DNA of 64,000 nt from Octopus sinensis (taxonomy: Eukaryota): contig NC_042998.1 in the NCBI RefSeq assembly GCF_006345805.1, positions 174,716,001 to 174,780,000 on the forward strand. The letters are read 5' to 3'. The position numbers were made by a program, and so were the translations under genes. The notes under the pieces were generated by a model that saw only the letters and a program-made list of their open reading frames with translations, had not been told where the DNA came from and did no database searches. Below, in pieces: positions 41,274 through 44,200 of this stretch. Within the stretch, counting starts at the first letter, position 1, and each line of letters starts with the position of its first letter.

Positions 41274-44200
41274 CTGAAGATATAAAATAAAATAAGCTTA
41301 GATTCTTTTTGGCAACCATATGTGGAACAACAATGATAAAAAAAGAATTGAAAAAAAAAAATCCTCGAAGAACTGGTTATTTGGGCATGCTGTATAGAAT
41401 TTTAGGAAGGCACATGGTGTAGTGGTTAGGGTATTCGGCTCACAAATGTAGGTTCATGTGTTCAATTTCCAGCAGTGTATAGTATCCTTGAGCAAGACTC
41501 TTTTTTTCTCATTGCTCCAGTCCACTCAGCTGGCAAAAATGAGTTGTATATGAAATTCAAAGGGCCAGCCTTGTCACATTCTTTGTCATGTTGACTCTTC
41601 CTGAGAACTATGTTGAGGGTATGCATTTCTGTGGAGAGCTCAGCCACTTACACATGAATTTCACAAACAGGCGGTGAATCAACTGGAACTCTCACTGTTG
41701 TAACCAGAGCACCAGGCCATAGAATTATAATGTTGAATAAGAACTTGAGTATTATTTCATAAATAAAATTGTATATATTTAAAAGATGAAGATGAACTTG
41801 AAATGTTATCAGAAGCTAGAGCTCGTCTGGCCAACACTCAAGGTAAAAAAGCTAAAAGGAAAGCTAGAGAAAAGCAGCTAGAAGAAGCTAGGTATGACTC
41901 GAGTTTTGTTTTTATATTTCTTTCCCAAAGGTATGGTTAATAAAGTGTGAAATATGGGCACTTAAGTATCATTAGAAACATAGTACTGTTGTCAGATAAT
42001 TGATAGTTTCCTTGTTGGATATGGCAGTTTAACTGTGGTTAAAAATATTGTCCATAAAGGTATTTTATACAAACTTAGAAGCCTGAACAAGGCGTAAGGA
42101 TGACATGCAAATTCGTGAAGCATTCCATATTTTTAAAAAACATTCGAGTGAGGTCGTTGCCAGTGCCTCTGGACTGGCTCCTGTGCAGGTAGCTCGTAAA
42201 AAAACACCATTTGAGCATGGCCATTGCCAGTACTGCCTGACTGGCCCTTGTGCCAGTGGCACGTAAAAGCACCCACTACACTCTTGGAGTGGTTGGCGTT
42301 AGGAAGGGCATCCAGCTGTAGAAACTCTGCCAGATCAAGATTGGAGCCTGGTGCAGCCATCTGGTTCACCAGTCCTCGGTCAAATCATCCAACCCATGCT
42401 AGCATGGAAAGCAGACGTTAAACGATGATGATTTACAGTCAAATGACTTAAAGAAGTAAGAGTAAAAGAGTCAAGTACCAGAGTCAATATAAATCACCTC
42501 CCATAAATTTTACATTTTGTTCCTAAGTTAGAAACAATGATTAAATATTAATTCCAAATTTTGAGGTAGGTGGTTAAGTTGATTACACTGACCCCAGTAC
42601 TCAACTGGTACTTACTTTATCAACCCCAAAAGGATGAAAGGCAAAGATGAGCTTAATGGAGTTCAAACTTGGAGCATAAAGACGGATGAAACGCCACTAA
42701 GCATTTTGCCCAGTGTGCTAACGATTCTGCCAGCTCATTGCCTTAAACAATGATTAAGTACCATAAATCCTCAAGTATAATCCGCATTTTTTCCCCAAAA
42801 TTTAAAGGTCAAAATCCCTGGTGCGTACTATATACGTGGTTAAAAATGAAAAATATTTTCTAAGCAATGTCCAAGTCTCTATTTGCTGTCAGGCAATGTT
42901 TATTCAGACTCATTTTGTGATGTTGGGCACGAAAATACCTTAAGCTAAGCCTGAAAGCAATGAAGTCATAAAAGAATCATCCATAACTTGCAGTAAGCAT
43001 CATTTATTAAAATAAAAGTATTCAGAACACAGAATAACATGTAACAAAAACAATTTGCAATCATATTTACATTCCCATATAACAGTTAAGAACATCACCA
43101 TTATTCTATTATGCATGCGCGGAAGTGTTTGTTCGACTAAGTGCTGCTGGTTTAATTACGCACGACTCAAGTTAGAGAAGGAGTGCGTATTATACACAAG
43201 GTTTAGATTTTTCAGAGGTATAGCTCCCTAAAAATCTCCTGCATATTATACTCAAGGGTGGACTATACTCGAAGATTTACTGTATTAAGAAGCAATAACC
43301 TCCAATGTTTCATGCTACATAGCAATGGCACTAGTCACACACATCAATCTTAGCTATTCATAGTAGCAGATGAGGTCTGTAATCATTAGATATGGATAAC
43401 ACATGCTCCTCTTCAGAATATAAAAATTATCACAGCACAAAGGATAGTGATTGGCATTAATAGTTTGGATCCAAATTTTACTAGGATTGGCTTTCCTGAG
43501 TAGATAAAATACATACCGGTCAATTACTGAGCTCAACTATTAACTACATCCCACCCACCAACATTTGTGGCCTTGTGCCAATGAAAGGAATTATTGTTAT
43601 GGCACATAGCTGTGAAATTAAAGTACTGCACTGCTAATCACATGGTCATGATTTCAAACCATACAAAAGCTATTGTAATGACTTGAAACAAAGCCTACAA
43701 CTAATTATCTCTTTATGACTAACAACAGATTACACTACCAGAAAATTCATTTACAATTTTTCTGCTACATGTTCATTTACAAAAGAAACATCCGAACGTG
43801 GCTGTTGCCAGCGCCGCCTCAACTGGCCTCCATGCCGGTGGCACGTAAAAAGCACCAACCGATCATGGCCGCTGCCAGCCTTGCCTGGCACCTTGTGCCA
43901 GTGGCACGTAAAAAGCACCAAATCACGGAGTGGTTGGCGTTAGGAAGGGCATCAAGCTGTAGAAACACTGCCAGATCAGTCTGGGCCTGGTGCAGCCTCC
44001 TGGTTTCCCAGACCCCAGTCGAACTGTCTAACTCATACTAGCATGGAAAGCGGACGTTAAATGATGATGATGATGATGATGAATATACAAAATATGAAGT
44101 GATACATACGCATAACCTTGTGGACTGCATGCTGAGGTGATACGACTTCCTGTAATTGTCCTAAGAGAAGCTTCTGCTTCTCCAAAGTAAGCTCTGCAAA

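Follow-up and report, generated by a model that had tools for sequence, protein, structure and literature searches.

Chimeric retropseudogenes that join U6 small nuclear RNA (snRNA) to the 3′ end of a long interspersed element (LINE) are known from several vertebrates, including U6/L1 in mammals and U6/L2 and U6/Mon-1 in platypus (Doucet et al. 2015, PMC4476161; Moldovan et al. 2019, PMC6789731). U6 chimeras of lizards involve L1-, L2- and RTE-like LINEs as well as AnolisSINE2, and opossum has 5′-truncated U6 joined to RTE_Mdo (PMC4476161; PMC6789731). With stringent LINEs, U6 is often 5′-truncated, the LINE piece is short, and target-site duplications (TSDs) are small or absent (PMC4476161). 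RNA ligation has been shown to produce the U6/L1 joint (PMC6789731). Tripartite chimeras attributed to double template switching have also been described, namely mouse B2-U6-L1 and Magnaporthe grisea WEIRD/Mg-SINE/MGL, in which SINE stands for short interspersed element (Gogvadze et al. 2007, PMC2104539). Here, we report a related structure in Octopus sinensis, located within a stretch of 64,000 nucleotides (nt) that was analyzed as a whole and is called the window below (RefSeq assembly GCF_006345805.1, contig NC_042998.1, positions 174,716,001 to 174,780,000 of the forward strand). In this structure, a piece of incompletely spliced CDC5L transcript, the 3′ end of U6 and the 3′ end of a (GAT)n-tailed LINE follow one another on one strand.

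The locus resembles the vertebrate U6/LINE chimeras in that U6 lies in sense orientation, its mature oligo-U 3′ end is joined to the 5′-truncated 3′ end of a LINE, and the joints recur. It is unlike them in its host, a cephalopod mollusc, in a hot spot at which the five terminal U residues of U6 meet a run of six A residues in the LINE (U5|A6, at least five loci), and in an extra pre-mRNA module on the 5′ side. A literature search for U6 chimeras in cephalopods found no paper describing them; one repeat annotation of O. vulgaris has 'SINE/U' families, which are given without comment (PMC13282606). Similar to the tripartite chimeras, copies of at least three RNAs lie on one strand, U6 occupying the center and a LINE the 3′ end, the apparent switches fall at preferred sites of the donor RNA, and a flanking direct repeat, here a candidate, argues for a single event (PMC2104539). 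In contrast to them, a partly spliced protein-coding pre-mRNA takes the 5′ place that a SINE or an abundant non-coding RNA has there, the modules may number four and include two different tails, the candidate TSD has 7 base pairs (bp), and the source gene is 27 kb away. A sequence-only reading of this stretch had known of no described triple of pre-mRNA, U6 and LINE. Tripartite U6 chimeras and U6 chimeras with LINEs other than L1 do have precedents (PMC2104539, PMC4476161), and what stands of that claim is that the pre-mRNA 5′ module differs from them.

Chimeras of mRNA with LINE-1 contain first exons whose ends often coincide with splice donors, suggesting cis- or trans-splicing into the LINE (bioRxiv 10.1101/2025.02.02.635956). 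In both cases sense host exons are found 5′ of a LINE in what appears to be one insertion, and absence of the source element is a recognized problem; unlike those chimeras, the present locus has an internal exon 4/5 piece, an intronic end and a U6 fragment before the LINE. Semi-processed retrocopies with a retained intron, e.g., rodent preproinsulin I, are near full-length and polyadenylated. They share an incompletely spliced template with the CDC5L piece, whereas the latter is a 306-nt internal fragment that has no poly(A) and is borne on the tails of other RNAs. Fungal U6 genes with mRNA-type introns, a case associated with Tani and Ohshima and with Brow and Guthrie, reportedly arose when introns were reverse-spliced into U6 and the product was reverse-transcribed. 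There too, an intron came to lie covalently beside U6 in DNA via an RNA intermediate; however, the fungal case involves a whole intron, positions of the catalytic center and a full-length U6 gene, whereas here an intron fragment broken at position +201 is joined to U6 nt 65 with a 2-nt filler. Such a joint is the signature of a jumping reverse transcriptase, not of spliceosome chemistry.

Thus, the locus is a new example of a known process, the formation of bi- and tripartite chimeric retrocopies, and not a new kind of system. New details are a cephalopod host with U6 chimeras as the predominant kind of dispersed U6 copy, a structure that probably has four parts and two tails, an internal and partly spliced pre-mRNA as the 5′ module, and the adjacent source gene. 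As judged from its sequence, the block would be a non-functional, multi-part chimeric retrocopy that arose in one insertion event through serial template jumps and/or RNA ligation, a reading to which we assign a probability of about 0.6.

Modules of the block and their sources

The block at 41785-42432 consists of three modules on the plus strand with only the dinucleotide 'ag' (42090-42091) between them, as had been described for it to the base. Its 5′ end is formed by the last 10 nt of CDC5L exon 4 (GATGAAGATG, 41785..41794), the 5′-truncated end of the captured RNA, which is identical to positions 13490-13499 of the parent gene in the same window. The parent then continues with gtaagaag. 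In the chimera, exon 5 follows directly, giving the junction GATGAAGATG|AACTTG at 41785-41800 and an in-frame reading DED|ELEML, and the 817-nt intron 4 is precisely absent. Exon 5 (97 nt, 41795..41891) has one mismatch compared to parent positions 14317-14413, which in the parent are preceded by the 3′ splice site ttaacag|. The copy then reads through gctag|gtatga and includes intron 5 up to nt 201 of 391 (41892..42089, nine mismatches to parent 14414-14614); this part is 198 nt long here owing to a 3-nt indel, and its 5′ splice site is intact and unspliced. CDC5L homology ends at parent position 14614 (gaaca|tattttcag). Segments 41794-42089 and 14316-14614 of the window are 96% identical (E=2.7e-133) and are the sole two matches across the 2.72-Gb genome. 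The spliced exon 4/5 junction and the unspliced intron 5, read earlier as about 200 nt, were therefore both borne out by comparison with the parent, and loss of intron 4 to the base requires an RNA intermediate.

A Pfam search with the 36-amino acid CDC5L piece gave no match, the peptide being too short. Identity of the piece could be assigned because the parent gene has Myb-domain, Myb_Cef and C-terminal exons. On the plus strand, the parent comprises an ATG exon at ~7.5 kb (placed by mapping of open reading frames, ORFs), Myb-domain exons 2-3 (10257-10364 and 12041-12265, domain matches), the source region at 13295..14855 (ORFs and splice sites), Myb_Cef exons (26593-32461, domain matches) and C-terminal exons that run to a stop codon at 38352-38354. 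Within the source region, exon 4 extends to 13499 and ends GATGAAGATG|gtaagaag, splice sites delimit intron 4 (13500-14316) and intron 5 (14414-14804), and exon 6 (14805-14855) was placed by ORFs and splice sites. Numbering of exons 4 and 5 is valid when the ATG exon is the first.

The CDC5L piece is not a classical processed pseudogene: 201 nt of intron 5 are kept, and its gaaca end is followed by ag and U6 and not by an A tract. As it has neither a poly(A) nor its own LINE tail, independent insertion was not possible. Intron-less matches to Myb_Cef (CDC5L) and Tcp11 were detected at G000:C9497:861099-861779, C8853:16521-17013 and C9061:14571-15916, most with in-frame stops; these are ordinary processed pseudogenes of both genes that flank the chimera.

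Several explanations for the end at +201 were considered and dropped. With CAUAAA 31 nt upstream and a CA cleavage site, the end resembles a cryptic poly(A) site but has no A tract after it; a branch point or lariat disagrees with the intact 5′ splice site, and reverse splicing into U6 would have used other positions. In addition, exon 6 opens with GCGC after the intron-terminal AG (14803-14812) and the chimera joint (42090-42099) reads AG|GCGT; exon 6 shares its first 4 nt with U6 nt 65-68, a microhomology that was spotted post hoc. A template switch at this exon 6 GCGC was dropped as well, since it needs an extra skip of 188 nt and is itself a post hoc proposal.

The filler 'ag' (42090..42091) at the pre-mRNA/U6 junction differs from both the parent intron, which has ta, and U6 nt 63-64, which are ct. 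It is followed by U6 nt 65-107 (42092..42134, plus strand), identified with Rfam and by alignment to U6 genes of the same genome. The Rfam match to RF00026 (42091-42134, E=7.7e-06, 31.8 bits) is below the gathering threshold solely owing to the 43-nt length. Compared to the genome's own U6 genes, the piece has three substitutions in 43 nt, two of them at CpG, and its 3′ end is the mature T5 (ATATTTTT), in agreement with the earlier description of the last 43 nt of U6 ending in five T. The first base, G65, was likewise correctly placed at the GCGCA loop: in the predicted fold, it is the first base of this pentaloop of the internal stem-loop, with nt 65-69 in the loop. At the U6/LINE joint (...CCATATTTTT|AAAAAAC), the U6 side is the same as the 3′ end of the genome's U6 genes. 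The piece is not a functional U6 gene, as nt 65-107 alone are present and a CDC5L intron is found upstream in place of a TATA-like element, which genuine U6 genes (L033, L038 and a tandem array on C1) do have.

The third module begins exactly at the A6 run and corresponds to 298 nt at the 3′ end of a LINE that is (GAT)n-tailed and present in many copies (42135..42432, plus strand). At least 3686 candidate copies of this segment were found in the genome, and the 40 copies that were scored are 92-95% identical over the full length. Copies of this LINE show a 5′-truncation profile, and longer ones reach an upstream ORF with reverse-transcriptase motifs; in copy L006, ORFs matched RVT_1 (E=1.3e-05 and 5.2e-04) and a PHD-like finger. 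All 29 copies inspected terminate in (GAT)3-8, a simple-repeat tail, and lack poly(A). Homologs of the reverse transcriptase are unnamed Octopus proteins, all from O. vulgaris or O. bimaculoides. The upstream reverse-transcriptase ORF and the simple-repeat tail agree with the earlier label of this module as RTE, whereas Pfam, homolog and literature searches did not confirm the clade. The module differs by 3.4% from the family consensus, mostly at CpG (a majority consensus, built only for the 300-nt non-coding tail for the purpose of measuring divergence).

The A6 run is a recurrent 5′ boundary of this LINE: five of 28 ordinary copies (L005, L011, L013, L018 and L032) end 0-7 nt away from it, at position ~1500. 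This suggests either that a LINE-derived RNA of ~300 nt has a discrete 5′ end at this point, at which a jump would begin, or that the reverse transcriptase stops strongly here. Pairing of U5 with the A6 run is an unproven cause of the hot spot, and the ordinary copies favor the discrete RNA 5′ end.

A fourth module, missed in the sequence-only reading, which had the three modules right and had made no use of the source gene 27.5 kb upstream, follows (GAT)3 after a 2-nt filler 'tt' (42433..42434, by direct reading and alignment). It matches ~37 nt at the end of the tail of a second SINE/LINE family, which is very abundant (...ACAGTCAAATGACTGAAACAAGTAAAAGAGTAAAAGAGT, 42435..42471, plus strand, by alignment), agreeing at 35 of 37 positions with the tails that follow U6 in L035 and L037; this tail type also adjoins U6 in L034. 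Genome-wide, (GAT)3 is followed by CAGTCAAATGAC within 12 nt at only three loci, and none of 29 other (GAT)n LINE copies carry this SINE tail next. In copy L025 (~1797-1815), the 3′ flank starts with TTACAG, as does window 42433-42438, which may reflect chance, target preference or a short 3′ transduction.

The earlier finding of no TSD holds for the boundaries of the three-part unit, at which we found no repeat of 6 nt or more; around the four-part unit, there is a 7-bp candidate, TAAAAGA. The left copy (41780..41786) overlaps the exon 4 piece by its last 2 nt, and the right copy (42463..42469) is near the end of the fourth module, both on the plus strand, so that all four pieces are bracketed. 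An equivalent match is seen in 0.8% of random pairs of window positions. TAAAAGA is the tail's own repeat unit, which would be expected from priming on a tail-like target, yet makes the boundary ambiguous. We therefore regard the four-part unit, primed on the tail of the second family, with moderate confidence.

The source exon is located 27,478 bp upstream of the insertion, on the same strand and in the same window, and the insertion is 3.4 kb beyond the CDC5L stop codon. It is antisense in the probable last intron of a convergent Tcp11-like gene, consistent with the intron named by the sequence-only reading. Exons of this gene were found at 59.5, 57.9, 49.7 and 47.1 kb; the last exon, at 41.0-41.4 kb, is weak. 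Both genes have a very high repeat load. A reverse-transcriptase ORF of a different LINE (weak RVT_1) is found at window positions 4169-4951 (minus strand); transposase-like ORFs, recognized by eye only, are present in CDC5L intron 6 (14864-15933, plus strand) and in the Tcp11-like gene (45850-46750, minus strand).

U6 chimeras and the G65 break across the genome

The 28-mer at the 3′ end of U6 occurs 642 times in the genome at up to three mismatches. Real U6 genes comprise a tandem array and a few singletons with TATA-like boxes. The array, at G000:C1:141.83-141.96 Mb, holds 30 or more U6 genes that recur every ~1.1-1.4 kb, each with a TATA-like box ~30 nt upstream, and is probably the main functional U6 locus. 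Outside it, nine of 11 dispersed full-length U6 copies that we inspected pass straight from T5 into SINE/LINE sequence. We also sampled 100 exact U6 3′ ends by pattern searches that returned 19-20 nt of flank, and 94 of these are located outside the array. At least 56 of the 94 run into SINE/LINE sequence, in many cases after a filler of 0-8 nt: a full SINE head follows after such a filler in 19, one conserved point in a SINE/LINE tail (GGCGGTGCYCCAGCATGG) in 30, a site deeper inside the GGCGGTGCYCCAGCATGG-type element in three, and the (GAT)n LINE in four. The 30 tail joints nearly coincide (...GGCGGTGCYCCAGCATGGCC..., ~55 nt before the tail end), and represent either a second sharp hot spot of template switching or a small family of U6+tail composites. 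Six further U6 3′ ends of the 94 have a common flank, CTGAAATGTTTTTTATAAA, and may belong to a dispersed U6 gene family or a duplication.

A comparable arrangement is present elsewhere in the window. At 18898-19070, a 5S rRNA copy (Rfam, 89 bits, model positions 7-113) leads into TTTTCTAAATAT and next into a full SINE head (AGGCGCAGGAGTGGCTGTGTGG...), which is the architecture of the 19 chimeras of U6 with a SINE head. The unit probably represents either a chimera of 5S and SINE made by a template jump or one member of a SINE family with a 5S head.

Additional U6/LINE junctions had been proposed in advance as a test of whether a general pathway exists, and a composite query consisting of full U6 and the first 102 nt of the LINE piece revealed seven other loci that span the joint. 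Four of them share the same U5|A6 point (C12:22241717, C9:50218124, C26:19291396 and C10:1655394), with U6 starting at nt 1, 8, 35 and 79; in the remaining three, the joint is 9-14 nt away. In two further loci, U6 is joined 70-80 nt deeper in the LINE tail, which brings the number of other U6/(GAT)n-LINE chimeras to at least nine, and the outcome of the proposed test speaks for a U6/LINE pathway. Identity to the composite query is 81-91% for the other loci and 94% for the window copy, which makes the window chimera younger. The view of the U6/LINE joint as a one-off, which was based on its 31-nt sequence being unique at up to three mismatches, was thus overturned, as older and more diverged chimeras share the joint.

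The 5′ break of the U6 piece also recurs. A pattern search that demanded a non-T before GCGCAAGG... returned six places, of which one was a point mutation and five were true breaks at G65 (four of them independent). Elsewhere, these breaks adjoin a microsatellite, an AT-rich flank or an inverted U6 5′ stem, and in no case a pre-mRNA. At a control position, nt 72/73, the corresponding search returned 10 places, all of them point mutations and none a break. The recurrence of the G65 break without pre-mRNA, together with its absence at the control, indicates that it is a property of U6 as a template and offers no evidence for a spliceosomal context. It may be caused by the structure of U6, possibly by the cluster of 2′-O-methyl groups, and by the palindrome GCGC.

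Inverted 'mini-U6' structures were observed at G000:C3:80537806-80538014 and G000:C6:2149661-2149842. In these, plus-strand U6 nt 65-107 is fused straight to the reverse-complemented U6 5′ stem (GTACTG / GTACTGCCGAA); ~150 nt away, another U6 3′ end points in the opposite direction, and the break is again at G65. The palindromic GCGC (nt 65-68) could allow two nascent complementary DNAs to prime each other.

Origin of the block

The modules abut on one strand at joints 42089/42092 (ag), 42134/42135 (no filler) and 42432/42435 (tt), and every piece derives from RNA. The 3′-most parts are 3′ ends of retroelements, first that of the (GAT)n LINE and then a (GTAAAAGA)n-type tail fragment. This head-to-tail fusion is of the kind expected from LINE template switching or RNA ligation, as the earlier reading had concluded. 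Divergences of the modules are similar (10 mismatches and one 3-nt indel in 305 nt for CDC5L, 3.4% for the LINE, 3 of 43 for U6), and fit one age. The locus is an old, inert fossil with no sign of function.

If all joints arose in a single event, a LINE reverse transcriptase would have primed at a nick or break in the DNA, ~3.4 kb beyond the stop codon of CDC5L. Its first template would probably have been the fourth module, i.e., the last ~37 nt of the SINE/LINE tail ending (GTAAAAGA)n. It would then have copied the 3′-terminal 298 nt of the (GAT)n-tailed LINE RNA up to the 5′ boundary at the A6 run, and next U6, entering it at its mature U5 3′ end and leaving it at G65, in the loop of the internal stem-loop. 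The fourth template would have been ~306 nt of a CDC5L transcript from which intron 4 was gone and in which intron 5 was present, copying having begun 201 nt into intron 5 and halted 10 nt into exon 4. Fillers 'tt' and 'ag' may represent non-templated additions at end-to-end template jumps, and the U6/LINE joint may alternatively have been made by prior RNA ligation. The expected pre-insertion site would read ...TATATATT TAAAAGA GTCAAGTACC... and lack the four modules. The proposal that an RTE reverse transcriptase had started on its own tail is not supported by this structure, in which 37 nt of a different retroelement tail lie 3′ of (GAT)3 and the candidate TSD surrounds four pieces; the enzyme of a different LINE may have primed.

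Several points weigh against this interpretation. The candidate TSD has just 7 bp, resembles the tail repeat and has a chance expectation of 0.8%, and the fourth piece, of 37 nt, could be a 5′-truncated copy that is older and unrelated. Template switching and prior RNA ligation are indistinguishable from DNA, and the recurrent U5|A6 joint could reflect a low-copy composite RNA of U6 and tail that was copied as one template. In addition, proximity to the source gene is subject to ascertainment bias, as a reader without tools recognizes introns only if the parent gene is in the window.

The main alternative, which we consider unlikely, is a 5′ transduction. Here, a 5′-truncated U6/LINE chimera would first have inserted in sense orientation at +201 of CDC5L intron 5; a transcript from the CDC5L promoter, with intron 4 spliced, would then have been retrotransposed via the LINE tail and 5′-truncated in exon 4, and the source allele would never have been fixed. 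A single template would explain the arbitrary intron end, the unspliced intron 5 and the use of one strand throughout. Moreover, 5′-truncated U6 with a short LINE tail is common both in this genome and for other stringent LINEs (PMC4476161), and chimeras of host-promoter exons with LINE-1 from intronic elements are documented, some with the source absent from the reference (10.1101/2025.02.02.635956). However, parent intron 5 is continuous at +201 (gaaca|tattttcag), such that the present allele has no source insertion, and no second copy of the exact joint with the intron exists genome-wide. This scenario also requires two retrotranspositions and loss of the first, and by itself leaves the 27-kb proximity and the fourth module unexplained.

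The sequence-only reading favored spliceosome-associated capture, in which U6 and CDC5L pre-mRNA were taken together from one spliceosome assembled on intron 5. Adjacency of U6 to an intron-containing RNA, the unspliced 5′ splice site and the start of the U6 piece in the internal stem-loop are all consistent with it, as is the resemblance of the joint 'AG|GCG' to exon 6 GCGC after AG, which was noticed post hoc. Nevertheless, U6 is the usual chimera partner both here and in vertebrates, whatever RNA adjoins it (PMC4476161), and it is fused to retroelements at most dispersed U6 loci without any pre-mRNA. The G65 break recurs beside a microsatellite, an AT-rich flank and inverted U6, at four independent loci that lack pre-mRNA. 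The intron joint at +201 of 391 nt, with its 2-nt filler, coincides neither with the 5′ splice site, to which U6 pairs, nor with a branch site or 3′ splice site, and the microhomology version demands an additional, unexplained skip of 188 nt. That CDC5L codes for a spliceosome protein is irrelevant to the choice of RNA by a reverse transcriptase. We thus regard capture from a spliceosome as improbable, and this part of the earlier reading was not upheld.

Separate nested insertions of tail, LINE, U6 and CDC5L fragments that happen to adjoin are highly improbable. Repeat density in the window is very high, insertion of a second element into the end of a first was named as an alternative by the authors who described tripartite chimeras (PMC4476161), and the fourth piece especially could be older. 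However, a 43-nt U6 3′ fragment and a tail-less CDC5L fragment have no means to insert alone, three exact abutments at 0-2 nt are very unlikely by chance, the other LINE copies inspected lack the SINE tail, and the module divergences agree. Although the region is repeat-rich, a contig that mis-joined reads from CDC5L, a U6 locus and a LINE copy can be dismissed almost entirely, because the CDC5L piece differs at 10 sites and an indel from its only other copy and has a spliced junction absent from genomic DNA, the U6 piece has three private substitutions, and the LINE piece is at most 95% identical to any of the 40 other copies scored, whereas a mis-join of existing sequences would reproduce them exactly.

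Source gene proximity and implications

Under the single-event reading preferred here, the distance to the source gene calls for an explanation. The chance that a random site in 2.72 Gb would be this near is ~2e-5. Even with the ascertainment bias, proximity by chance would need tens of thousands of gene-derived chimeras genome-wide, and we take the 27-kb distance as real evidence that the CDC5L RNA was local. It may have been chromatin-associated, nascent or prematurely ended. A tentative extension, which is possible but which we do not favor, is that the reverse transcriptase jumped onto a chromatin-tethered CDC5L transcript, nascent or prematurely ended. Intron 4 would then have been already out while the 3′ end of the RNA was just 201 nt into intron 5. 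The locus would be a DNA fossil of a co-transcriptional splicing state, and LINE insertion or break repair would sample RNAs of the neighborhood.

Our analysis extends U6/LINE template-jump chimeras, known in mammals, reptiles and a fungus, to a cephalopod, in which they appear to account for most dispersed U6 copies. Two sharp hot spots, the U5|A6 joint with its discrete 5′ boundary of the LINE RNA and the break in the U6 stem-loop at G65, bear on the question of template switching versus RNA ligation. In addition, a pre-mRNA module near its source gene provides a lead that reverse transcriptases acting on chromatin take up local transcripts. If this is general, retro-chimeras would record local nascent transcriptomes, and they would insert preferentially near the genes that gave rise to the captured RNAs.

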